A stretch of 64,000 nucleotides of DNA from Lepidodermella squamata. Taxonomy: Eukaryota; Animalia; Gastrotricha. The notes under the pieces are model-generated. The model searched no databases. It saw only the letters and a list, made by a program, of their open reading frames with translations, and was not told the origin of the DNA. How positions within the stretch are numbered: position 1 is the first letter of the stretch; every line of letters starts with the position of its first letter. The stretch lies in assembly GCA_047495785.1 (NCBI GenBank), contig JBLDXI010000013.1, positions 3,038,001 through 3,102,000 of the forward strand. Reading direction: 5' to 3'. The translations under genes and the position numbers were made by a program. Positions 39,197-62,046 of the stretch are shown here, one piece after another.

Positions 39197-42100
39197 ATGG
39201 AACTTGGCTTGATTGGAGCTTTTACTGTGTTAATTTGGCTTTGTCCATATACTCATTCCAGAAAAGCCAATGTGATCAATTATTCGGATCGACTGAACAT
39301 AACGCTTGTACAGAAGGATGATACCACTGAAAAGCCCACGATCGAGGAATTGATGCGCTCGTCACCGAATAACAACCTCACCCTAATCGGAAGCGAACAA
39401 CAGCCGGATGGCGAGCGATTACTCAGGTTCAGTCTCGTCATTAGCGGCTATGAATTGTCTGGTTACGATCTCGTGTTCGCGGAAGACCAAACAGAAGCGA
39501 TAAAATACGCATTGAGTGGTAAAATACTGGACGACATTCCTCGGTTTGACGAATTAGCCAATCGAACAATCGAATTATCGCAGAAAATCAGCAGCCATGC
39601 AGGCAACAGCGCTTGTTCGGCGGGACTTGCCGAACAATACAACTACACGCAGGTATTAACTTCCGTGATATTGGATTCTAACAGAATTGAACTGATAAAT
39701 CGTGAATTTAACAGGGAATAGCGGATGAATTTTTATGGAATTTTTCAAGGCGAAATTTGCATCTTCAAAAGGACAATACGATGACAATGTACGAAAATTT
39801 CTACATCATCAACGAGCTCGACGAAGCACAAAGATACCGTATGATTTTTGCAGCGTTGTTAACGGAATGAATTATTACCGTAGGGACGGGCAATTTTGGA
39901 CAAAACCATATTTTTCAAGGATTAAACATCAGTCCTAGTTCAGAAACTAATGATTTTTTTGGTAAAAAGATGTGTAATTTGAGCCCTGATTTATCGATAT
40001 AATTCGGTGATTTTAAGATTTTTACCTGATTTTTGATTTTCGGCCATCAAAAACATTAATGGCTGGAGTTGGAGAATTAGCGGGCAATTCTGCACCAGAA
40101 AAAAATATCACCCTAATTTATCTACCGAAAGCATGAATTTAGTTTCTGAATTCTGGATTTGTTCTGGTGTGGACATCACATTTGCACACCGAATGACTTT
40201 GTGAATTTTCTGTCTAAAATTACCCGAAATTTCCCGATTTTCACCTGAACTTCAGGTGAATGCCTGCAACAACCAAGAGTATAACCATGCCAATTTTCAA
40301 CCCGGAATGATTATTATTTGAAGATATTAGGGGGTCTCAAATCTGCACTTGAGTTGCCTTGCGTATTACATTTCTTAAAATCAAGTATTGTTCCAATCCC
40401 ACCGAGACTTTTGCCATCCGAAAGCTCAAGACACGGGGGATTTTATGCAACAATCACTTATCGTACGGCGTTACAAAGCTATTCACCTACAAAGCCGAAA
40501 TGTCCAGAATTACCCCGTCCAAATGTATCCTGAACTCTACAATACTCTCCATCCTTATTCTTTATAAATAGTCTGCGTGTACGACGTATTTAACAACACC
40601 GTGTTACTAATAACATCAACTTCGACTTACGCTGTCAACGCTACAGGTGGCAATAGAAGAATCGGCAAGAGGAAAGTGAAACTGGATCTTACCGATAGGC
40701 TTACTGAACTTGATGAATGCATAGTTGAACACGCCAAGGGATATTTCAACATCTACGATATGCAGGGCAGTACTTCAAGTATCAACAGTAAGCAATTGAC
40801 CTATCCATGTGGTGCTCTTGTGGAGGATGAGGTAACTTCGTCATGATCCTATTAATGGCTCTTAATTCTAGTTATTTATGAAATAGGTGAATGGCGGTTA
40901 CGGCATTGCAGCAGATTGCATCGACTACGCTATTCAAACACAAAAATGTCTGGCAAAGCATGGTAAGAACGAATAACCAAACTCATCAGAACTGTTTTAT
41001 TAACAAAAGCTTCTCAGCGGATTTAAATGATTTCGGTTACATCACGAATGGTAAACCGTTGCGAATTCATATCAATTACGGTAGCATGCGAGCAATGGCT
41101 TTCTGGAACGAGAACGGGGTTTTCTTTGGTAATATTATATTCCTAATAACTAATGACTAATGTGCTAAAATTTTCGAAATAAGGCAACGGAGACGTATCA
41201 AACGAATATCCATCTTGCTCAAGCATCGACTCTGTTTCCCACGAAATCGGTCACGCCTTGACTAATCGCTTCTCCGGGCTATACTACTCCGGCGAAATGG
41301 GATGCATTAATGAAGGTACAAGTTAGATGGCAATGTGAAGTAAATCGTTACTTACTGTACTTTCAATCAGCCTTTAGCGACATCACTGCCATGATGGTTC
41401 GCGCTTGCGTCCGAGGTTCAACTGATTGGCTGTTCGACATCGATGCGCAGAAGGTTCGGGATGCTGCGAGCCGCAATCTTATTCGGAATATGAAAAAGCC
41501 GACGTCAGATGCGCAGCAAATAAAGAAGTACAGCGAGTACAGGCCGAAGATGGACGTGCACATCTGCAGCGGGATCTTCAATCACGCTTTCTACTTGTTG
41601 TCTCAAAAACGAGGCTGGAATATTTACGAGGCTTACAAAGTTTTCTACGGCGGAAACAGATTTTACTGGGAACCAAGTTTCTCTATGACGATGGCAGAAG
41701 GTTTATGCGGAATCCTAAACTATGCTATCAGCCAAGGGATGGAATCTAAAAAAGTCGAAGACATTGAAGACGCATTCCGCAGAGTCGGAGTAGTTATCAA
41801 CGGAACCAAATGCGATATTTCGGACGATTCGGAGAGCAATCCTGGAGCTGTATTCCAGCTTAACAACTGCGTTACTCAAGAAAATATCGAGGGAGATAGC
41901 GATGAAATGTATCAATTTCTTTTCGAAGTGAAGCGAAAGCCTGGTAAACCGGCTCCGTCGAAGCTTATCATTTCATTACGAGTACCTGTTAGTAGAATAG
42001 ATGACGGATCATTGTCGTTGGATGGCGGTGGTTCCGATTGTAATGACGAGAATGGTGATGATGAATATGACGGGAATGACGAAGACGATATGGAAGAAGA

Positions 42101-42368
42101 TGATGATTGTATCGACAAAGACCTAATGACGGTTGATCTACTCATATATTATGGCTTCAAGAACATTACTCAAGGCAATGTCACCATCGACTACGGCGAA
42201 TTCGACGCAGTTCTAGAGCATCAGTCAGAATCTGTACAACTCGTCATTGAATGCCCACCCGTTGGCACATACACTATTAATGTTGCGTCTTCGACCTCTT
42301 ACAACGAAGTGTCATTGAATGCCTGTTATTTGACCTCAGAGACAGATGTTTGCGGGGCGAAGGCTTGA
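39197..42368 (+). CDS. Secreted M4-family (thermolysin-type, LasB/vibriolysin-like) zinc metalloprotease with C-terminal PPC-like domain, at least 7 exons
   Basis: Signal peptide; ATGGNRRIGK, VNGGY, HINYG...AFWN, HEIGH (41240-41254), GCINE|AFSD split by an intron, DVHICSGIFNHAFYLL, GWNIYEAYKVFYGGNRFYW, AFRRVGV - colinear with Pseudomonas LasB. Confidence 0.9.
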
Positions 42369-46667: not shown

Positions 46668-47293
46668 TTTTAAACGATTAACCTAATTTTATTGAATTTG
46701 CGTTGAAATATCACACTTTCTGTGCTGTTTGGAAATACAACTGGTTGATAAGGTGCTTGCCGCTTTTCGAGCGTAAATAGCACAATTTAATCTTTGCTAC
46801 ATTTGCAGCAGGAAGCGCTAACAGAGGGTAATGTTAATGGCGTGCAACATCAACCTGTTACCACCCAGCCTCAGCAGGTGTTAGCGGGTGGATAGGGTGA
46901 TATTCCCTATCCATAAATTATGTTGTCAAGCTTTCCTATTAAGGTTCAAAAGGATTTTCCTTATGTGGCCGTGTGACCTATTTATTCTAACCATTGGGTG
47001 CGCAGTAAAAGGCGCCGTAAGGGCTGGAAAAATGTGAAAACTTTGGTATGAAAGCACTGGCACCTCTGCTAATCAATTATTCCCGTCAAAAAAATGGAAA
47101 GACCTGCGTCGAAAACACCAGCCATCGGTTCCCGTGATAGGCAAAATCTTACGTTTGGCTGCAATATCTGCTGACATCAATCAGCGAATTGCGCACCAGT
47201 GTCTAGCCGCTAGACGTTATCGATTTTCCAACAAAAATGCAACATCGAAGATCTCAGATTCAGTTAACCGAAATCTTACACGTAAAAGACAAC

Positions 47294-49310
47294 ATGAAGT
47301 CAGCATTAGCTTTACTGGCGTTGTTTCCGTTGATCAAGGTTTTGCATGCAACGGGCGATTATTTTATGCCAGCGAATTGCGGTCGGAATTACCGACTGGC
47401 GGCCGCCGATTCGTTCCAACAAATTGCGAACATTGACGTCCAACGATGCGCTGACCTGTGTGACAGAACTGCCAATAATATGTGTCGATCATTCGCGTTT
47501 TACCCAGCTAATGCAACCCAGGCATCTCTTTGCTGGCTGTACTATGGGCATGCTAACGAGCTGTGGGACGGCATGGAATATCAGCCAGGGTGGTACTACT
47601 ACCATTTGGTAATCTAAAAGAAGAATTATAACCTTTTTGTCAAATCTGTAAATCTGTTTTAGCCTCGACTCGGTGAACCTTCACCCTGCAAAGCCAATAC
47701 ATTCCATGGTTCATTTCCATGTCATTAAGTTTCTTTATCCCTTTATTTCTTCGATTGTCTGTAGATTGCACAACGGTGGCCAAGTTAGGGCGCGGTCCTG
47801 GAACCTACAATTTTCAAGTCGACGTTGGAGGGAAGCCCTTCAGAACTGAATGCGTCTACAGGAAACCCGACAGCGCGGTTACAGTTCGGCTCGGGTATTT
47901 TAACGAAAGAACAAATTGATGCCTTGATTTATTTAACTTTTTCTCAAGGACAAACATCGGTACTTCTGACTGTGAGCAAAAATCATCAAGTCAATAAGAA
48001 ACTAATTTCTTTTGCGTTAAACAGTGTCGATGGTTTTCTTCAACAGAATGGGTTAGTTTGAATGCCAGAGTTCCCCAATTTATCAATAATGCTACTCCAT
48101 TCTACTCCATTATAGCAATTCAAGACCTAGATTTCTCTGGAATGAAATGGCAGGACTATAAATGGGGTACGAAAGCAGATTTAATGAAACTGAAATTGAT
48201 AATTTACCTGCTCTGCAAGGATTTGCCTCGAATACTAATGCGACCAAGTGGATTGGCCTAGAATTCGCTAGCGGTTTAACATCAGGAGGTTTGACAAATT
48301 CTTTTGGGTTCAAGTCTGTATGCCAATGTAAAATTGCCCAGATTTCGCGCTGTCAGTAGCTGCTACGCAAACCTGGTGCATCCAATTGCAGCGAATCGGA
48401 TCAATAGCCCAACTCGTTCTGAAGAATGAGTCAAGTGTGGCGAACTGTGCCGTCTTTACGCATCGGCAGGGCCGGTTGATGGTTGTAGGAAGGTCGACTT
48501 GTGTCTGCAAGGATCCGACCAGTGACCGTCTCATTCTCTGCGGCTGCAACACACCTGGAATCAAAAAGGTATCACAAATGCTTCAAATCCAGCTTGAATG
48601 AAATGTTGAATGTGATTGATGTTTCACAGTTCCAATTTGACAGTGGGAGCTCAGCTGTTATCGAAACATCAGAGCCGCCGATGAGCAAAGAGACTTTGTA
48701 TTGGACTTATACTGGATCATTGGCGACAAACTTGGCACTTCAAGCTCAGCCTCCAGCTACATCTTCATTCAAAACTTGGGCCAAAAACACAAGTGGGACT
48801 ATTTATTTAAAATAGCTCTTTTCACTTTTCACCTTTCTTAGATCGCTGGTCGATAGTGTTTTTCGTGAAAACAACTACCATGTACCAAACCATATCATAT
48901 CGGGGAGCCGCCATCGGCAACGAAGCAAATGGATACAAAATCTGCATTACGACATATGGCTCGGTGCGTTTTTATTCGGGTGTTTTGACTGTGATTAGCC
49001 TAATCTTCTTTAGGTTTCATCTTGCGGAGGGGGTTTTATTACTGGCGATTTTCATTACAATGTCAACTTTATCACGTCAGACAATCCTAATGGTTCGATA
49101 TTATACGGAGGGGCTGGCTGGATTCAAAGCTCATTCCTCAGTACTGGCCCTCAAAGCACCGGCAGCCTAACGGCGACAAAGTATAAACCGATTTCCATGT
49201 CTAGTAGAGTCGCTAAAGTTTTAATATTTTTTTGCAGTGCCACTGCTTTTCGATACCGGACGGGCGAGACAGCGACAGAAGCCATAGTTTTGCTCTACGC
49301 TATGCCGTGA
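47294..49310 (+). CDS. Secreted PAN/apple + fibrinogen-related-domain-like protein, copy 1 (many short exons)
   Basis: Signal peptide; PAN motif CADLCDRTANNMCRSFAFY...CWLY; FReD-like C...G.GPGTY...PF.TEC, DFSGMKWQDYKWGF, KWIGLEFASGLT; ends LLYAMP* at 49310. Confidence 0.7.
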
Positions 49311-49348
49311 TCGATCTTGCTCACTTGTTACGCTGCGCGAATTCGACC

Positions 49349-49593
49349 CATGCTGTCGGCAGCGTCATCGGTGCCCATATTGCAAGCCGAAAATCCGCAA
49401 CGACTGTCACGTTTATTTTTAATTGTTTATTAAATATATTATATTAAATAATAATATTGTTAATCGGAATACAATGAAAATATTAAATAGCAACCCCTTC
49501 AACGTTCAACGTTGCTAGGGGGCTCGGATGTGGTTTTCCCTAAAGCGGCAGCTGCTTCTAACCACTTGACGTCGTTATTCGCGCGCCAATCTG
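49349..49593 (+). repeat. Left terminal inverted repeat (245 bp)
   Basis: catgctgtcggcagcgtcatcggtgccc...cgtcgttattcgcgcgccaatctg is the reverse complement of 58539-58781. Confidence 0.95.
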
Positions 49594-49905
49594 CCCGTGT
49601 TGGATTTGAGACTGCCCTAATATGTTGTTGATAGCAAACACTTAGAAACTTTGTCCCTTATGGTGCTTCTTGGTGCTTGCTTGCGATGTCTCATATAATT
49701 GTCGGAGATATAGGTTAGCTCGAGGGTAGAACGCAAACCGCATTTTAAGTAACTGATGTTTGATTACATGCCAGCTATTTACGACTTCCTTGGTGCTGTT
49801 AGATTTTATTGCGTCTATCACTTTAAGGCAACGCTTGGTTTTTTAGTTTATACTCACCGGCTTGCAATTTTAATCTCACCTGAAAGTCCGCTTTGTCATT
49901 ATTAG

Positions 49906-51580
49906 ATGGAGAGTTTGACGACTTTTATCCGTAGCAATGTTTATCGCCGTGTTATCGCGAATCAGCCGCTGCTGTCGTCGATCGTTGCCACCGTTGACGT
50001 TAAGCAGTTTTGTGATCTTGCTCGTTCCGCAGTTACGCTCGAGCTTCGAACTTACGGCCAGCTAATTTATGTTCTTAGTACTATTTACAGCCTGAAAGTC
50101 AGCAGGCTGTTTCATGATGCTAATGACTCCCTTTGCATTTTGCAGGTTGATATTGTTAAGCGCGTCGAGACTATCGATACCAACACCTACGTGTCGAAAG
50201 CTCTCGAGCAGCTGGGGTGCCGCTTGCCATCCTGTGATGTGCCCATTATTCGTTCGGTAATTATATACCCAAGATTGTTATTTTTGTTTTTTTCAACTAT
50301 GATGTTGCTTTCAGCTATGCGATGTGGTCTACTTGGAGTCAGCTTCGCACCAGCTTGAGCTGCCTTGTGCCCCGTTGATCGGTACTAATTGCAACTTTGA
50401 TGTGGATTCTGAACCCATCGTTGACGATGGCTTTGGACTCTTGGTTAACGGAGACATCGATTCAACCATCCCGATCTTTGATCTGTTAACTCAGGAGATG
50501 AAAGAAGAGCATGCGTCGTACTTGACTTTGAAAGACGTGCCTGAATGGGATGATCGTGCTGCTATTTTCGATACCGCAAAGCACCTCAACTCCGCCACGA
50601 CGCTGGAGTATGAAGAGAAGGAATTCGACTTCTGGTTTGCCCCACTCTTCAGTCGCTCAATAGCTTTGGATCGCATTGGTGGCCTAAGAAGTGATCACAT
50701 TATCCCAGCTGACGTTCTCATCAGAAGGCCTGCTATCGAAGTTTCTTCTCGTTTAAGGACTAACATTTTCAGCATTCTAGGTTGGGATTTTCATTAATTC
50801 GTTAGCGTTATCTACTATATTTGTTTAGATACTTTACCATTCACGAATATCTTGGATGATTCGTCTGCCTACCCTGACTGCGAAGGTTGGTTTTATAATT
50901 ATTTGGTCTCACTTCTTATCGATATTTATTTTTATATACAGCGATTCATGGTCTTGCATATTCCAAGGAAGTTCGGCTGATAAATTACCCCCGTAAGTAT
51001 TTACAACGACTAATTTTTGAATTGAAAATATCGGTATTCATTTATAGATCGAGACGGATGCGATATCATTCCGACAACTCAGTTTTCGATAAGCCGCCTT
51101 CAGCAGCCTGCTTTGCAGCCGGAACAGATTGACGAAGAAATACCGATATCGCGAGTTCCTCTTGACCGTCTGTCAGCACCAAAGCGAAAAGCAACCTCGA
51201 TTTTGGACAAATACACCCCGATCGCCAAGAAGAGTCTCATGTGTTGTGTTGAATCATCATCAGCCGATGCCCAATCTGAAGAAATTAGTGTAGGTGCGGT
51301 AGATGTTGTATTAGATAGCTCATCTCAGCCTATTCATTTAATTAGCTCTTCAATTTTAAGTTTTGTCGATGACAACGATCGCTTTTGTCAAAATCAGCTC
51401 AGCGTTTTGTGTAGAAATCAGGATGTTTGCTTCAGTCACGTTGTAGAAAATTTAGACCGTAAGGACGTTTCTAAAGCTTTTTTTGGCCTGTTGTTGGCTG
51501 TAAAAAATGATAAAATTAATATAACCACTGTTGCTAATGGTGATCTCATGTTGACTGGTCGTGGCAATATTCAGCAGTAG
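49906..51580 (+). CDS. Rad21/Rec8-family alpha-kleisin (cohesin subunit), 485 aa, exons 49906-50256, 50315-50780, 50829-50885, 50942-50992, 51048-51580
   Basis: N-terminal LELRTYGQLIYVLSTIYSLKVSRLFHDAND ~ RAD21 [30 protein letters not shown]; C-terminal winged helix LDRKDVSKAFFGLLLAVKNDKINI ~ [24 protein letters not shown]; all four GT-AG introns keep frame. Confidence 0.85.
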
Positions 51581-51831
51581 TGATTATACTGCATTTCTTT
51601 TTCTAATTATTCTCTATGTTCGAAACAGCCGAAAAAGTCTGAACTGATTTTTGTAATAATTATGTATAATAATGAATGATCTTATTCGCAAAGTAGAATT
51701 GAATTGATCCCCAAATGGCTTGCTGCAATTTCGATATCTTTAATTTTTCTCAAACTTTGGTATATTTTCATGATCGATTGAAAAAGCGCGGTTGAAATAA
51801 AAGAAGGCGTTATTATATCTCTGTTTTATTG

Positions 51832-52443
51832 CTATGGAAATTCAATGGCCGGAATTTTGCTTTGAGTACAGTTAGGTAGAATCGCTATGCGAAAACGTGC
51901 CAGTGGCGGCGAAAGGTAGCTGCTTCTCATATCGTCTTTAATTTCTTGCCACCACGTTTGCGCGGCATCGTCCGGTGCCAGCAGTGGCGTGATTTCGCCA
52001 GGTGAGAGTGGAGGCAGTGTGTTGGCGATGAGCGGCGATAAATCGCACAGCCCTGAAAATTAATGCGATGAATATGGCTGAAAATATAATAAACTTGAAT
52101 TTACCAATAATTTTATCCGCCTCGAACGTTTCTGCCATCAATGCTTGTTTTCGCAAGAAGTCGCGTTCGCTTATTGTCCGCGCTGAGTAGTTGCATCCCG
52201 TTGGCAAGTATGCTACCGCGCCACACTGATCTGCATTTTTATTCATATATTTATAACAGCCTTAAAAATTCACCAAAAATTACCTTGCGATTTGACGGAC
52301 TGAATTAGCGCAGTTTTGGCTTGTTTGCGGCGCCGATCGCGCTCACGAACTTTCTCTATTTCGTCAGGAGTCCTATTTGCGCGTATCAACCGCATTTGTT
52401 CGCGATGTTGAGCCAGTTGCTCTGCATTTCTGCGCCTGCCCAT
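51832..52443 (-). CDS. Cargo gene 2: 168-aa protein with basic helical (STPR-like) N-terminus, exons 52443-52284, 52230-52105, 52052-51832
   Basis: MGRRRNAEQLAQHREQMRLIRANRTPDEIEKVRERDRRRKQAK...; two ~53-nt GT-AG introns keep frame. Confidence 0.6.
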
Positions 52444-53264
52444 TTTTTGCTACTTTTCAGTTATGCGGTTTAGGCGTATTTAATTTTTTTCATCCTCTTC
52501 CCACTTGCTTCAATTCGTAATAATATTAGCGCCTATCCACTCGAATGCGCGCGCGCAGCGCATTGAAAGGTGTGCGATTGTTCGATCGTATGCCATTCTT
52601 CTGCGCGCGTATTGAATTCTTTTATTCTCAAATATTGACACCTTTCCGTGGTCATTCCGTGGTCATTCCGTGGTCGGAAGGGTCGAAATTCAGGTTGTAT
52701 AGCGCACCTGTTGGTGCCTAGAAGGTGCCTGGTAAAGCTATATATGCGTGCGCGCGCTCCAAGCAGTAACGCGCCCGCCGCCCGGCGTTTATTAAGGCGG
52801 CGTGAATTCACGGTGTGTCTCTCTGATGTACGATCGGTCGAAATAGCGATCTCAATCTTCCATGTGTTCGCGGCATCGGTCGGTTTGAGTGACATATATC
52901 AAAAATTCGCGAAATATTTTACTTTGGCCCAGTTACAACTCTACACAACAGTTACACTTATTATAAGACTTATCATATATTGCGCTCTCCACCTTAAAAA
53001 TCTTTTTACTTAAGGCGGAAAGTGCGCCTATTCCGCGGCTTGGTGCTATTATTATAATAATTATTGCGGCATTAGTTTTTTCTCATCCAAGCGTTTCTAT
53101 ATTCTACGCATTGATCCAGCTGCGCGCTCATTAATTGCTCATTTTGTTTGGGCATCAGTTAGCCACCTTAATTTGTTCGATATTTCTGTATATATCTACC
53201 TATTTAATACTATTGAATATTTTTGATCCTTAGTTTTGTCATTAACTAATTATACACCTTAATT

Positions 53265-53855
53265 ATGGCCTATTGTTTGCGAGAGCGCGCAACTTTGAAG
53301 AAGCCTGTGATTTATGGCTCTGCCGTGACTGAATTTCGGCGCGTCGACGATTACTTAAAGAAACAGCAACAAGTGCGGCTAGTACGCGTCCTTGAACTCA
53401 AGCTGTTCGATCCTTTAGCTGTTTTTGATCGCCGAAAAGAAATGCTATTTCTGGCTAACCAAGTGGCTCTAGCACTCGAAACCCAGCTTAATCGCGATGC
53501 AGCTAAGCCAATGCTGAATCAGCTCAAGGTCGTAGCCCGTCATTGCGTTTTTCCCGTAGGTAAGTTGGCTCAGCTGGAAATTTTTAAAAGGTGGGTAAAC
53601 AGTGACTAATATGTGATATCGAGTAAAATGTTTGAATTTTGTAGCGAGAAAAAGCGCTACATTCAACTATCGGCCGAACATCTCTCCGAAATTTTCAGCC
53701 GTTTCGACTTTGCCGTTTCGCTGTTTGCCGTGAAAAGAAACACTAGAACTAGCCTTGTAAATAACGTCTCGTTTTCTATGAAAAAACCTATTATTGAAAA
53801 CTCGCCGCAAGCCATTTGCAAGGCTATAATTCGTATAAATTCAGTTCGATTCTAA
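53265..53855 (+). CDS. Cargo gene 3: ~178-aa basic protein of unknown function, exons 53265-53590, 53645-53855
   Basis: In-frame 54-nt intron; N-terminus MAYCLRERATLKKPVIY. The 3' end could splice differently. Confidence 0.55.
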
Positions 53856-53896
53856 AATCTGTTTTTTATTTATTTTAGAACCTCATTTTATTTAAC

Positions 53897-54334
53897 ATGT
53901 CATCAACAAGTCATAAGCGCCCCTGTCGTAAGGTAGATATCATGGAGCGAAAAGTTAAGGCTACTCCCAGTACCCCGAAACAACGGCGACAACCCCGAAT
54001 CGTGGCTGATCGTCAGAAGACGACGCCAAGCAAAACCGCTGAAGAGGTAATTTTAGTCTAATTTCATTTTTGTTATTTGGCTCTATGTTATATTATATTT
54101 TAGCATCCTGATAATCGTATCCACCCTACAACACCTACAACCGACGAGGAGGTGGCGGCCTATTTCGATCTCGAGCCTCGCGTGCTTATGAGCAATCGAT
54201 ACCGACTTTACCCCGATCACGATCGCAACAGCAGTGCTGCCAAGCAGGAACGCCGGATCTTATTTCGGCTCTTTTGTTCGAGGCTGGGCAAAATACAACC
54301 AGCGCCGAAACCTAAGCGCTTGTTCAAGAAGTGA
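53897..54334 (+). CDS. Cargo gene 4: 126-aa Lys/Arg-rich protein, exons 53897-54046, 54104-54334
   Basis: In-frame 57-nt intron; several S/T-P sites and NLS-like PKPKRLFKK. Confidence 0.55.
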
Positions 54335-55552
54335 TACATTTAATTGTCCGATTTTCTCGTTGCTTTTTGTCTAATGAATGATGGCTGCTTCAACGCAATA
54401 TTGTACAATCGCAATTTTTAACACGTAATAAAACACACGCATGGCATGCTTTTTATTTGTTTCCTGTTTATTTATTACCGAATGGCAAATTAGTGAAGAT
54501 TTTTAGCTCGGAAGATCGAACAATACCATTAATAGGTCGGTGCAGAGATAACAGAACGGCTTAGAAAGAGCTGAGTTTCAATGAGAGGATGCTATTTTAT
54601 AGCAAATCAGGAGATAATTCCAATTAGGAGCTCATAAATATTATTAAGGTGGCTTTGTATACATTATCGGCGTAAAACTTTGAAATTATCGAATAATATC
54701 ACAAAAAATATTGAGATAGCTGAAAACGAAAGTCGAGCTAAATTAATACGAATTCATCGAAAATCGGAAAGCGTATATCAATGAAACCAGCCGATGATAA
54801 TAAAATAATGAATTCGCCATATTAATCAAGCACGAGATTTCGTTATAAAAAACGAACTCAGAGAAGAAAATATACATTATTAAACAATATCAAGGCGGTT
54901 TTATATGGCCATAAAACCGACATTCCACCGGATAGATTTTTCCAATAATATAATTATAATTTTTGAAATTATTTAAGGTGGAGAATTATCGAAATACCGG
55001 TAGGACTGGGTAAGACCCCAAATCATTAAGGCGGTTGACGTCTCAGAACGTGATAATTAAAATAGAATAAAACACACGCTTTTCAAACAGCTATTCGATG
55101 ATGATGAACTGATCACCGATGTCGGTTTGCACGGGTTAACAACATATGGAACGATCAATAGTCACGAAGAAAAGAGGAATTAATACATAGTGTTGATTGA
55201 AAAGCGGCGTAGTCAATTTTATACAAAATGAATATATGAAACCACAATTATTCCTATTTGAAAAACGTATTCTCAGAGACGTATCCTCTAATCAGTAATA
55301 CAAGCAATTATTAAGGCGGCGTTAAACAAATATATTGCCCATCGATTAGTGGGACTAGCTAAGACCACAAATAATTATCATTCAGTCAAGATTGAAAACA
55401 AGATTTTTTGCGAATTATAACTACAACGAGATCGCCATCGAAAAATGAAAGTAATGAACGAATACTCATTTTAGTCAACAAAACCATGCAAAACATCCAT
55501 TGAAAGACTCAGATTAATACTCAGAATATTAGTCGTATTGAAATAAGAAAAA

Positions 55553-58074
55553 TCAACAATCGCACGTGAAATCGAATGGCTCGAAGTCATTAGAATCGCT
55601 GAAGTTGACAGCTGATGTAACTACAGTTGGCTGAGATTCGATGTAAGCATTATTCGCACCAATATCCGAGGCCAAACGGACATTGCACAATTCCATAATC
55701 TGCTGACTCTCATGACCGCCTATAAGACAGACTTGATGCGCAAGCTGTTCTTTCCCGATCTTGTGCAGGATTTCGACATTTTCACCCGAAATGGCGGCAA
55801 GATAGGTTCCAGCGAGGCGAAGACGTTCAAGTCTATCCCAAGTGTGGAATTGAAAGATATGAAGGTAGGGGGTATAGCATCCCGAAAGCCGACGGACGAG
55901 GTTCGCGAAAGCGTGAAAATCTGCGTCGGAATCGGGAATCGGAATAGACTGATCTTTACAGCGAATTAGAGCGAATAGCTTTTTGTAGAGCTTCTTGGCT
56001 TCAGCGAACTGGACCAACTTGGCCTGAATCGGGGACCCTTCGACCAAAAAGCCGTGGTCAACGGCTGCGCTAGCAAGCTCCTTGCGAGTGAGAGACTTGG
56101 CGGAAATCTGCTTTTGCGCGAGGAAGTCGCTAAATGGTTTCGAGCCGCGATGCTGCTTCAGGACGTAATCGACTTCCCAACCACCCCTGCAGACCGACAT
56201 CGGCGACCACAGTTCGTCAGCATCGAATAGCAGCTTGAAAAGCGTGTGGTGATTCATGTTGCTGATTTTCACCTCGCTCTTTTCAAAGCTGACAACTGCC
56301 TTTCGGTCGTAACTTTGGACGAGTTGGGAGATGCGTAGCTCATAATCCACCACGGACTCCTTCATAAACAGAAAAAACTATAAAAAAAAAATAAAATATA
56401 TTAAGAGCAATGAGAATAGATATGACGATCTTACCGCTCGAAGAACAAGGAACGCGATACGCAAGGCACAGTGAAGAGAGCACCAGTAAATGTCGTCAGC
56501 GTCGATTTTAACGAGGCTGGAAGGCAGATCGCGCTTCGGCTTGCGATCGTTTTCGTCGATGAGAACATTCAAAGGCTTTGCGTCGTCAACAAAATTGAAG
56601 ACGCAACATGGGCAGCCAAGCGCGTCGGTGTGGCTAGTTCCAACCAGCTTGCCAATAGCCGGTAGATCAGCGCAAATGGAACTATATTTAAAGAATATTG
56701 AAATAAATGACTTCTGGAAAAAGCCTGAGGCAACTTACAGTGTAACATCTAATTTGACACCATCATCAAGTGTGAGGCCTGTAACTTTCAGCTCGTTAAA
56801 ATCATCGAATACTGGCAATAAATATTCCAGGTTTTCTCGCGATTCCTTGCCGAAAAACACGCCCGCAGTGTATTCGGTTACAGTTGAGACGGCGACTTTC
56901 TGATGAAAAAAGCCGTAATTGAGTCGGTAATGAGGAAATTTGCCCGTCCGGAAAATCGTACCATCGCCTAGAAAAGAAATAAAAATTAAATATTGGAAAT
57001 TTCAGTTTAAAATGTATTTGCCTTGAATACGGATGTTGACAGTTGGAGCCATGGGCTTCGGAACGATTCCATTGCGAAAAAGGTAAGGTATCTGACGACT
57101 AGGAAGCACGAAAGCAGCACTGGTCACGTCTTTACCCTCTGGAACGACAACAACCTGGATGGGCAGGATGTTTGCTAGGATTTTCTTTTCTTGTTCGAAT
57201 TCGCGCTGAGTTATTTGATATGTTGAGGTTTTTAGTATTTTAAACACCGTCCTCATGGACCAATACTTCGTGGAGTAATCTCGCACGAGACTAGATTAAA
57301 ACAAGTCATCAGTTGCTACTAATTGCTAGCAATAGTTTAAACCTTACCTTCTAAGGGCTGTTTTCCTAGCCTCATCGTCACCAACCCAAATTTTCTTTGC
57401 AGCAACACCATGGCTAAAGTTCACCTAGACAACGAGTGAGGTGTAGATGAATTCTGAGCGATAATTAAAAAAAACTAACTTGTACAGACAGGGAGGTGAC
57501 AGGATAGAAACTACCGAAGCTCGATAGTCTCCCGAACAGCGCATTCAAGGGCTTGATTAGCTGCCCTTTGTGCCGATCGCATCGTTTTTGGCGACTCAAT
57601 AAAGCTAATGGATTTTGTTCCTTGACGTTGAGGGCCAATCCTTGAGGTACAAAAGTCTTAAAAATGTCCCTCTCACGGCGACATTCGTCAAGATTGCTCT
57701 TGGTAGCAGCAAGTTGAGCTTCTGAGAATCAATTATTAGGGAAATTCTGGCATAATAGATAAAATGCTCACCTAATGAACGGATTGTTTTGTAGTCTTCC
57801 AAAGCTTTCCCTTCTAGCAATCGCTTGGGGACGGTTTTAGCCGGTGTTAGCCCAATAGGAGGAGCAGCTTCTGCGCCTAACGACCGCTTGGGGGCGATTC
57901 TAGACGGTGTGACTGCAGTCAAAACTGAACTAGCAGAGTTTGCTAATACCAGTAAGAAATAAAATTGTAAATTGCAACTATTTTTTTATCGATGGCAAGA
58001 ATACCGATATACGGCGACAATACAGCTTTCGGAGTAGAGACAATAGACAAAACCAAAGGCGAAAGAGGCAACAT
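55553..58074 (-). CDS. RAG1/Transib/Chapaev-like DDE transposase, ~702 aa, 8 exons (58074-58013, 57929-57772, 57721-57480, 57424-57348, 57290-57022, 56967-56739, 56681-56435, 56377-55553)
   Basis: IRIQGDGT (Asp codon 56963-56965; RAG1 SCDGM), FGKESRENL (RAG1 LADESDHETL), ICADLPAIGKLVG..CPCC (Asp codon 56666-56668 plus Zn CxxC), CSLHCALRI, TPYLHIFQFH and SGENVEILHK (Glu codon 55772-55774; RAG1 ASEGNESGNK). Frame intact assuming one GC-AG intron; N-terminus uncertain. Confidence 0.85.
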
Positions 58075-58538
58075 AGGAGATCTCCGAATCGCAGAGGCAC
58101 CATTGAGGACTGAAAAATAATATAGGAAGGAGACTCACAGTTTTTTTTCAAAGAAATCGAAGGAAACCTCCAAGAACACGAGGGGTACTTGCATCGTCAG
58201 TAGTTGCAGTTGGAAGCATTAACTTCTTCAACAAACCTGCTGACCCAAGACTGTGATTTGACATCAAGTAAAAATCTAGAGATACATTTAAAAAGTTGAA
58301 ACAAAGAGGTAAATACATCATGCCCGCTTGAAATGCATCATGTATGGTTCTGTGATTAACTTTGATCTGTGATTAATTTGTAACACCTATAAGCAACCAT
58401 CCGATAAGAAAATGCTTCATGGCAGAACTAACTCTGAACTGGCGAAACTAGCGTAACAGCAGGGCGAGGTATATCAACATAATTTACCCTTAAGCAAAGC
58501 GAAAGCAATGCTATCAGCAGTCACAATACAGGGATATT

Positions 58539-58781
58539 CAGATTGGCGCGAATAACGACGTCAAGTGGTTAGAAGCAGCTGCCGCTTTAGGGAAAACCGC
58601 ATCCGAGCCCCCTAGCAACGTTGAACGTTGAAGGGGTTGCTATTTAATATTTTCATTGTATTCCGATTAACAATATTATTATTTAATATAATATATTTAA
58701 TAAACAATTAAAAATAAACGTGACAGTCGTTGCGGATTTTCGGCTTGCAATATGGGCACCGATGACGCTGCCGACAGCATG
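58539..58781 (-). repeat. Right terminal inverted repeat (243 bp)
   Basis: Reverse complement of 49349-49593, ending gccgacagcatg. Confidence 0.95.
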
Positions 58782-59706
58782 ATTATCACCTTGCAAAGGA
58801 AACTTACCGAAATCATTCCGGAACTTCAATCCTACTATATTTTCAAATAAAATGAAGTGGCTTCACTAAGTAGCTATGTGCTGCTATAATTTGAGTAACG
58901 GCGCCACATTCATATAGATGATATGCTTTGAAATGTCACCTGAGCTTTGCCTGAGCCCTGAGCTTTTGAGTGCTGTCCATTCTAGGCTCAATTTGCAGTG
59001 TTCCAAGTGTTCAAAAATGGGGCTTGTTCGGTTTTCCCATCAAACCGAACTACTTGTCTACCAAATTCGCTATCATTTATGGGTTTATCTGTACATTTTT
59101 AACAGTAAAATGCGTGATCAGAAGAACGAACATCTTGAGCAGGCCTTGCCAACCTAGTCAGCTAAACGTTCTTAGTGGAATTTACTGGAACGAAAATATG
59201 TTGGGAAGAAAAATTCATTGCCGATACGTTGATGATGATGACAGAAGTAATAAAATATTCAGATATCGAAATAACTTGCTGGAAAAACATCAACGATTAT
59301 TCAACTGATGTGTGGACGGCGAAATCTATCGGGTAGCGGCTGAAATCGATCACTTCGTCTGGAAGAACTTCGTTTGCGAGTCAGACAGCAGAAATTCTGA
59401 TATTCATGAAAAAATACACGAAAATCGGATGCCAGGAGTCATAATTTCGCTGCTTCCTTAGCTCCGTCTATGCACATGGCTGGCTAATAAATTATTAAGG
59501 CTATAGATACAGGATAACTTGTGTTGGCAACACCAACGAATATTCAGTTCGGGCGAGCGGCACGGTTGCGTTTATAGCTGTTTAAATCCGTCATAACAGA
59601 TCTAGGCATCCGCGAAATGCATTCAATGTCTACAGTCAATGTCACGATTTACACTATCCATAGCTCATAACCAAGAATCTCAGATTTGAACAAATAAAAC
59701 GCAAAA

Positions 59707-61743
59707 ATGAGATCAGCATTTCGCTTACTGCTGGCGCTGTTTCCGTTGATAAACGCTGTGCATGCGTCTAGCGAGTATTTTATGCCAGCAAATTGCGGTC
59801 AGGATTACCGATTGGCAGCCTCCGATTCGTTCCAACAAATTGCGAACATTGACGTCCCAAGATGCGCTGACCTGTGTGACAGAACTGCTAATAATATGTG
59901 TCGATCATTCGCGTTTTACCCAGCTAATGCAACCCAGACATCTCTTTGCTGGCTGTACTATGGTCATGCTAACGAGCTGTGGGACGGCATGGAATATCAA
60001 CCAGGGTGGAACTACTACCATTTGGTGATCTGAAAAAGTTTACGCCCGCCTATTGTTAATTCAGTGTTTTTCTTATCAGCGGCGAAACGGCGACCCTCTA
60101 CCCTGCAAAGCCAACACGTATCATGGTTGATTTCGGATTCTCAATGACAATTTTTCTTCAATCCAAGCATTGAATGTCCATAGATTGCACAACGGTAGTC
60201 AAGTTAGGTCGCGGACCTGGAACCTACACTTTCCAAGTCGACGTTGGAGGAAAGCCATTCACAACTGAATGCACTTACAGAAAACCAGACAACCTGGTTA
60301 ATTTACGTTCCGGGTAAATAACCTAAAGTGCAGATTGACGTTTTGTCAATTCATTCTATTTTAAAGCACACTCATGGGTACTTCAGATTGTGAGTATAAA
60401 CGGATGGTCTTTGATAATGATATGAGATAAATTAATTTGCCTGATTTAGTGTCCATGGTTTTCTTCAACCGCATGGGTGAGTTTGAACAACCAACTTTAA
60501 TAATAAATAGCCTACCTTCCGTTTTTATAGCAATCCAAGACATGGATTTCTCGAAAATGCAATGGCAGGACTACAAATGGGGTAAGCGATGAGTTTTCGC
60601 TGCTACATATTGATAATTTGTCCATCTCCGAGGATTTGCGTCGAAAATCAATTCGACCAAGTGGATTGGTCTTGAATTCGCAAGCGGTTTGACGTCAGGA
60701 GGTACAGCTAATTATTTTCTTCTCACCACCAAGCCAAATACCTTGAAAATTACCCAGATTTCGCCCTGTCGGTAGCTACCTCACAAACCTGGTGCATTCA
60801 ATTGCAGCGAATCGGATCGATAACCCAACTCGTTTTGAAGAATGAGGCAAGTGTGGCGAACTGTACCGTGTTTACGCATCGGCAGGGCCGGTTGATGGTT
60901 GTAGGAAGGTCGACTTGCGTCTGCAAGGATCCGACAAGTGACCGTCTCATTCTCTGCGGCTGCAATACTCCTGATATCAAAAAAGTATTCATAATGCCTG
61001 GAATCCAGCTTCAATAAAATGTTTAACATGGTTCGCAATCCGTGTATTACAGTTCCGATTCGACAGTGGAAGCTCAGCTATTATCGAAACATCCGAGCCG
61101 CCAATGAGCAAAGAGACTTTGTATTGGACTTATACCGGATCATTGGCCACAAACTTGGCGCTTCAAGCTCAGCCTCCAGCTACATCTTCCTTCACAACCT
61201 GGGCCAAAAACACAAGTGATGGAATTTTTGCTTAAAATAGCTGTTTTTACTTTATACCTTTCTTAGATCGATGGTCGTTAGCGTTTTTCGTGAAAACAAC
61301 CTCCATATACCAAACCATATCATATCGGGGAGCCGCCATCGGCAACGAAGCAAATGGATACAAAATCTGCATTACGACATATGGCTCGGTGCATTTTTAT
61401 TTTTGTGTTTTGACTGTGATTAGTCTAATTGTCTTTATAGGTTTCAACTTGCGGAGGGAGTATTAATAGTGGCGATTTTAATTACAATATCAACTTCATC
61501 ACGTCAGACAATCCCAATGGTTCCATCTTATACGGAGGGGCAGGTTGGGTTGTAAGTGCGTTTATCATTGCTGGCAGTGCAAGCTCACACAGCCTAACAG
61601 CAACAAAGTATTATTATGCGATTATTATGCCCTTGAAGCCGCTGTATAAGCTTGACATATTTTACCGCAGTGCTACTGCTTTTCGATACAGGGTGGGCGA
61701 GCCAGCGACAGAAGCCATAGTTTTGCTCTACGCTATGCCCTGA
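59707..61743 (+). CDS. Secreted PAN/apple + fibrinogen-related-domain-like protein, copy 2
   Basis: Colinear paralogue of 47294-49310 with highly similar exons and more diverged introns; ends LLYAMP*. Confidence 0.7.
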
Positions 61744-62046
61744 TTGATCTGGCTGTTGAGAACAACTGTGACACAACATCGAATACCGCCCGTTTCCCTT
61801 CAAAAGCACACATGCCAAAATCTTGACCTAACTGTAATCTTACTGTTTGAAAAATTGAGCCTGATTTCTGTGGAATTGTTGATTGGATGGACAGCATTTA
61901 TTGCTGTAGTCCGACTTATCTTGATTAACACTGAAACAGACATCATATTCGAGTTTTATTGTTTCATGAAGCATCAGAGAGATCATCTTGAAGACGGGTC
62001 GTTGATTCGATGTACTCGGCGCACCGGCGGCATACCGGTTGACTCA

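Follow-up and report, generated by a model that had tools for sequence, protein, structure and literature searches.

The window examined here is a 64-kb stretch of contig JBLDXI010000013.1 from the gastrotrich Lepidodermella squamata, and positions 49349-58781 of this window constitute a 9,433-bp element (~9.4 kb) that is framed by terminal inverted repeats (TIRs) and holds a predicted transposase gene together with a kleisin-like gene. With a probability of roughly 0.7, the element is a young, probably autonomous cut-and-paste transposon of the RAG1-related CACTA-Mirage-Chapaev-Transib (CMCT) clade, and its kleisin is a maintained accessory gene that would engage the SMC1/SMC3 proteins of the host. 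Kleisins are the subunits that close the cohesin and condensin rings, and cohesin controls both sister-chromatid repair and loop extrusion. As no report of a transposon-borne kleisin was found in a full-text literature search, a kleisin as transposon cargo is apparently new; helper genes and occasional captured host genes are already known in transposons.

The element is delimited by two long arms in inverted orientation.
49349-49593, + strand: left TIR, terminus 5'-CATGCTGTCGG
58539-58781, - strand: right TIR, reverse complement of the left arm
A repeat search and the reading of both ends showed that the core of the arms (49349-49584 against 58546-58781) extends over 236 nt with a sole mismatch at 49531. 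Beyond this core, a 2-nt indel is followed by 9 further matching nt, and the full alignment (49349-49593 against 58539-58781) covers 245 bp at 98.8% identity, in agreement with the ~99% over 245 bp given by an earlier sequence-only reading of the window. The 23-nt TIR tip CATGCTGTCGGCAGCGTCATCGG is present in the 64-kb window at the two ends of the element only (chance expectation 0), and the element termini are 5'-CA..TG-3', reading CATG...CATG. Rfam and tandem-repeat scans of the element returned nothing notable.

Evidence that this segment has moved comes from public sequencing data. Three public runs were found, and run contigs were compared with positions 49300-55299; of the runs used below, X1 is a DNA-type run that contains 89% of the element's words, and X2 is a cDNA run, with a SMART cDNA oligo at one contig end. 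The insertion point is placed as follows.
49339-49348, no strand: left flank at the insertion point 49348/49349; the right flank begins at 58782
An X1 contig reaches 49348 and then matches 30 of 30 letters from 58782 onward, a junction lacking exactly 9,433 bp, and the same 49348/58782 junction is seen in an X2 contig, which runs 19 letters past it and is matched over 59 nt around it. A form lacking exactly these 9,433 bp therefore exists, and the 9.4 kb, with the kleisin gene among them, behave as a single inserted unit. Movement as a single unit had previously been argued from the absence of the element next to a duplicated copy of the host gene; the conclusion is supported by the junction contig, whereas the argument from the paralogue is uninformative because homology between the tandem copies stops 27 nt short of the insertion point. 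Between 49563 and 52052, six positions (~0.24%) distinguish the window copy from the majority contigs of X1. With near-identical arms, a transposase inside and an empty-junction contig, the description of the element as a young TIR-bounded DNA transposon holds; it is young and recently mobile, and probably autonomous.

The same evidence bears on the view that no mobile unit exists here and that two solo inverted repeats happen to lie around host genes, including a host gene of REC8/RAD21 type. This view can draw on the finding that the outer 90-120 nt of the TIR occurs in other X1 sequences, independently of the element, but it is disfavoured and highly improbable: the contig lacking exactly 49349-58781 is flush with both TIR tips, which practically eliminates a chance pair of repeats, the arms are near-identical over 245 bp, and a transposase gene lies within them. 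These X1 contigs follow the TIR for this outer part only and then diverge (loose ends at 49438 and 49471), which points to an outer repeat part common to related or non-autonomous elements.

The cargo gene was modelled from the following features.
49906-50256, 50315-50780, 50829-50885, 50942-50992 and 51048-51580, + strand: coding sequence of the kleisin-like gene, 5 exons, 485 aa, isoelectric point 4.8 (splice model)
51581-51805, + strand: 3' untranslated region (UTR) of the kleisin gene (end of an X2 contig, AATAAA ~10 nt before it)
49756-49797, + strand: hypothetical upstream kleisin exon, 14 codons (in-frame open reading frame (ORF) beginning MF.Y)
The introns are of the GT-AG type and 48-58 nt long, the encoded protein is acidic, and the five-exon model yields exactly the 485 aa that had been reported for an intact gene convergent to the transposase. 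The transposase (-) and kleisin (+) genes are arranged tail-to-tail, with stop codons 4 kb apart. A 1035-nt X2 cDNA contig skips 50256-50314, 50781-50828, 50886-50941 and 50993-51047, corresponding to all four predicted introns, with 0-1 mismatch, and a 575-nt X2 contig spans the 3' part of the gene (51231-51805). Since these splice joints occur in the cDNA run and none was found in the DNA run X1, the intron-less form of the kleisin is RNA and not a retrocopy. The kleisin gene is intact, transcribed and correctly spliced. Joining the candidate upstream exon by a 108-nt GT..AG intron would give a protein of 499 aa with a canonical-looking kleisin start; within the gene, X2 contigs reach no further upstream than 50009, so that RNA neither backs nor counters this exon.

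The identity of the cargo was assessed by family tests (Pfam, PDB and language model) carried out exon by exon or on ORF pieces, with Pfam cut-offs of 23.1 bits for Rad21_Rec8_N, 22.7 bits for Rad21_Rec8 and 21.4 bits for PAN_1. Exon 1 matches Rad21_Rec8_N (PF04825) above its cut-off, at 27.2 bits (E 4.4e-6, with residues 27-92 aligned to profile positions 32-99), and, as independent evidence, its language-model neighbours are Rad21_Rec8_N clusters (score 0.94), 22 of the neighbours carrying PF04825. The last 100 aa have neighbours at 0.93-0.95 in kleisin winged-helix clusters (Cnd2, CNDH2_C and Rad21_Rec8), which include cohesin and condensin types. The two kleisin-type end regions are on one polypeptide, all four connecting introns being confirmed by the cDNA contig. 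Together, these matches allow the predicted protein to be identified with confidence as a kleisin and, with moderate confidence, as an alpha-kleisin of the cohesin type, an assignment resting on the N-domain. Both kleisin terminal domains had been claimed for the protein: the N-terminal one is upheld by its profile score, whereas the C-terminal one appears winged-helix-like by its language-model neighbours and stays below the Pfam cut-off.

Like the canonical alpha-kleisins RAD21/SCC1 and REC8/RAD21L, the predicted protein has a Rad21_Rec8_N domain at its N-terminus, an apparently winged-helix-like C-terminus and a long acidic linker. It differs from them in being short (485 aa), in its weak C-terminal profile score, in being encoded by a transposon, and in lacking a pairwise sequence match to any solved kleisin, as a PDB sequence search with both ends gave no match even at E 10. 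A further difference concerns separase. ExxR sites cleaved by this protease are typical of mitotic and meiotic alpha-kleisins, and not of all kleisins. None was found in the linker of the element's kleisin, where [DE]xxR occurs only at residues 37 and 417, both within the end domains.

The second gene of the element is read on the opposite strand.
58074-58005, 57942-57772, 57721-57480, 57424-57348, 57290-57031, 56967-56739, 56681-56435 and 56377-55553, - strand: transposase gene, 8 exons, 706 aa (splice model)
54490-55552, - strand: presumed 3' UTR of the transposase mRNA (low X2 cover, at depth 8-25, from 54492)
An intact spliced DDE transposase had been announced on this strand, and an eight-exon model with GT-AG introns of 50-63 nt, which encodes a basic protein of 706 aa, is in line with it. 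Inspection of the predicted protein identified D275 (in RDGT), D355 (in CADL), C373xxC376, H605x4H610 and E631, with C373 placed 17 residues after D355 and E631 20 residues after H610. The RAG1 counterparts are D600, D708, C727/C730, H937/H942 and E962, and their spacing is almost the same as in the element's transposase. An exhaustive HMMER search of 1.84 billion representative proteins with the 274-aa last transposase exon returned two fragments only, from other samples and 42-46% identical, which sit on 1.5-kb and 0.6-kb contigs without context; the Hx4H..E block is kept in both of these distant relatives, including P0002. Comparison of the transposase alignment with metagenome, viral and prokaryote-genome collections, and of the TIR tip with the metagenome collection, found nothing, and an atlas search with a transposase exon gave no usable match.

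Two further observations concern this gene and its family. The nearest relative (L001:50-1087, 40% identity, other sample) has introns within a stretch that here forms one exon, and it reads past the C-terminus of the present protein; the transposase family therefore occurs in at least one other eukaryote, with another gene structure. The presumed 3' UTR contains an inverted 64-nt copy (55073-55136) of exon 8 coding sequence (56183-56248; 85% over 66 alignment columns), and the transposase mRNA may thus fold back on its own coding region, as a form of self-regulation or a small-RNA trigger.

The CMCT clade comprises EnSpm/CACTA, Mirage, Chapaev, Transib, Plavaka and ESTA as well as Lanisha, and the D, D, CxxC, Hx4H, E catalytic and zinc motifs are common to the whole clade, the elements of which have been described with target site duplications (TSDs) of 2-5 bp (PMC12730594). 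The element is read as CMCT because its motif pattern and CA..TG ends match this clade; it fits there as judged from motifs read by eye, and the family within the clade is left broad. An earlier assignment to the RAG1/Transib type is accordingly retained at the level of the clade, on the motifs, the RAG1-like spacing and the CA..TG ends, and is not sustained at the level of Transib: this copy has no 5-bp TSD, and the CAC-heptamer ends of Transib are absent, the terminus being CATGCTG, which has only CA and TG in common with the heptamer. Elements of the clade frequently carry accessory or cargo genes, and the clade also shares the CA..TG termini and the motif set with the element; the differences lie in the lack of a TSD at this copy, the very long TIRs, and a transposase with just two detectable relatives among the representative proteins searched.

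A parallel in gene arrangement is offered by ProtoRAG (RAG1L-RAG2L of amphioxus) and the vertebrate RAG1-RAG2 pair, which resemble the element in combining a RAG1-related DDE enzyme with a convergent second gene, in the case of ProtoRAG within a TIR-bounded transposon. In contrast to these systems, the partner gene here encodes a kleisin in place of a RAG2-like kelch-repeat protein, 4 kb separate the two genes, the termini of the 245-bp TIRs read CATGCTG and are not heptamer/nonamer-like, the 5-bp TSD is missing, and the transposase has no sequence-level match to RAG1 (Pfam and PDB, by exon).

Of the six differences between the window copy and the X1 majority, five are non-coding and one is synonymous (Ile246), with none nonsynonymous; the neutral binomial chance is ~0.05 for so few coding and ~0.03 for so few nonsynonymous differences, a hint of constraint on the kleisin and no more. 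The kleisin could instead be a passenger, namely a fast-evolving host kleisin paralogue captured at the DNA level with its introns (Pack-type capture or transduplication), transcribed from a promoter of its own or of the element, useless to the transposon and intact through youth. DNA transposons do carry captured host-type genes, as illustrated by fungal elements with TET/JBP genes (PMC12730594), the copies are so young (~0.24% divergence) that an intact frame in one of them proves little, and word-indexed searches of a large protein collection with the N and C exons of the kleisin found no relatives of similar length outside this genome. Capture without function is nevertheless considered unlikely. 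The protein has diverged so far that it is detectable by profile only, yet it has kept its two kleisin-type end regions, its five exons and its correct splicing, which suggests long selection, and the observed differences avoid nonsynonymous sites. It is on these grounds that we infer a maintained accessory gene and not a dead passenger.

The fungal examples also help to place the cargo. Several lineages of fungal DNA transposons carry TET/JBP dioxygenase genes (PMC12730594), and these resemble the element in being cut-and-paste transposons with a chromatin- or DNA-acting gene of host type beside the transposase; in the present case, however, the cargo belongs to the structural subunits of SMC rings and is not an enzyme, and the host is an animal.

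For a maintained accessory gene, it is proposed that the transposase would cut at the CATG tips and move the whole 9.4 kb, and that the kleisin would dock on the neck of host SMC3 and the head of host SMC1, giving a cohesin-like ring in the service of the element. The engagement of SMC1/SMC3 is a guess. Sister-templated repair, end synapsis and meiotic drive had been suggested as conceivable roles by the sequence-only reading. In the preferred role, the ring would hold the donor site to the sister chromatid around the time of excision, or would draw together ends that lie 9 kb apart, in this latter variant by loop extrusion. Repair of the excision break from the sister would then raise copy number. 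With a linker lacking separase-type ExxR sites, the ring would not be opened by separase, and would thus be separase-resistant. That the kleisin and host SMC1/SMC3 form such a transposon-specific, separase-resistant cohesin, pairing the ends or tethering the donor to the sister, is put forward tentatively and, in this specific form, is possible though doubtful.

Precedents exist for SMC complexes acting alongside enzymes of this kind. Cohesin loop extrusion drives RAG scanning (10.1101/2020.01.01.891473, 10.1101/2020.06.30.181222), and in Paramecium a developmental condensin I assists, and is needed by, the domesticated transposase PiggyMac (10.1101/2025.10.03.680307). In both cases, as in the proposal made here, an SMC-kleisin complex serves DNA cleavage of the transposase type. 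The host supplies the SMC complex in these systems, whereas here the element itself encodes the kleisin and the interaction is only proposed.

A kleisin could also act by interference. As a decoy or antagonist, a dominant-negative kleisin would build no working ring but would titrate the host's SMC heads, the neck or a HEAT subunit, and so weaken a restraint that SMC complexes place on the element or on the choice of repair. The linker without ExxR and the poorly matching extreme N-terminus (Pfam alignment from residue 27, profile position 32) would suit such a protein, as would the deeper X2 contigs of the kleisin (74-99) relative to those of the presumed transposase 3' UTR (6-27), contig depth being a poor measure of expression. 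However, two predicted SMC-contact domains are retained where a pure decoy needs one, and restriction of the element by host SMC complexes is not evidenced in this animal; the idea is entirely inferential and its probability low.

Several results weigh against a CMCT transposon with a maintained kleisin accessory, and these concern both of its genes, its insertion and the proposed role. The last exon of the kleisin scores 13 bits against Rad21_Rec8 (PF04824), below the 22.7 cut-off, and AlphaFold2 prediction of the C-terminal 100 aa was unusable (pLDDT, the model's confidence score, of 48). For the transposase, no Pfam family was matched by exons 3 and 5-8 with a limit of E 10, or by an ORF covering exon 2 with a limit of E 1, PDB searches with exons 7 and 8 gave no match even at E 10, and an AlphaFold2 model of exon 8 built on a 3-sequence alignment was likewise unusable (pLDDT 42). 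Since the share of the element's 9,433 words found in X2 (0.24) is already accounted for by the kleisin and the presumed 3' UTR parts, the cDNA library probably contains hardly any of the transposase coding region. The empty-junction form represents either the second allele or a paralogue of the target site, and the latter would count against the reading. The signal of constraint rests on six differences in a copy chosen for being intact, and a non-cleavable kleisin entering cohesin broadly should be toxic.

The insertion site provides a further such point. No TSD was found: with the element in place, the sequence is ...GACC[CATG...CATG]ATTATC..., the empty junction being GACC/ATTATC, flush with both TIR tips, where 2-5 bp would be expected for the clade. 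When all end registers were tried for a hidden TSD of 2-5 bp, the only candidate was AT/AT, and the empty site it predicts differs from the observed one. It is possible that this lineage integrates blunt, or that end joining after excision trapped the copy at a break; blunt integration with a 0-bp stagger is not known from the CMCT clade.

Between the two genes lies a region for which the evidence of expression is slight.
51806-54489, no strand: internal spacer with candidate ORFs, e.g. 53265-54334 (+) and 51832-52443 (-) (ORF/splice models only)
The three small spliced genes of the sequence-only reading, in 51800-54400, were not borne out, as cDNA depth in X2 is <=3 across 51900-54499, with no spliced contig in X2 and no Pfam match. 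The X1 run contains variant contigs of similar depth for 53250-53630 and 54221-54284, in which 12 of 172 letters differ in 53351-53522 (~93% alike), and the variant of the 53250-53630 segment has a different sequence upstream at 53249. These diverged variants indicate a second copy of both segments, at another locus or in another element family.

The element lies between two tandem host genes.
47207-49310, + strand: host gene for a secreted PAN-domain protein (ORF pieces; PAN_1 23 bits against the 21.4 cut-off)
59698-61743: tandem paralogue of the PAN-domain gene
The two copies are homologous over 47291-49321 and 59704-61754, at 81% identity. The stop codon of the first copy is at 49308-49310 and the insertion 38 nt downstream of it, which places the element in the 3' UTR or flank of this host gene. 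Elsewhere in the window, an ORF at 41310-42368 encodes a Peptidase_M4_C domain of the thermolysin type (79.7 bits) and, in an otherwise animal genome, may have come from bacteria, and an intronless ORF of 601 aa at 12-1817 encodes a phosphorylase b kinase regulatory subunit (beta). The best named relatives of the latter, from mollusc, annelid and fish, are only 35-37% identical, so that close sequenced relatives of the host are missing from the protein collection. Neither of two window ORFs looked up exactly in a gene-position index was on record.

The two processes controlled by cohesin determine whether a cut-and-paste element increases in copy number and how its distant ends meet, and a natural element with its own kleisin would make links between cohesin and transposition directly testable. 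Should the kleisin prove to be a neutral passenger, what remains is an unusual case of gene capture in a rare transposon lineage. For chromosome biology, the protein could serve as a compact, separase-insensitive tool. If a transposon-specific cohesin is indeed formed, a RAG1-related transposase would already have cooperated with cohesin before V(D)J recombination and outside it.

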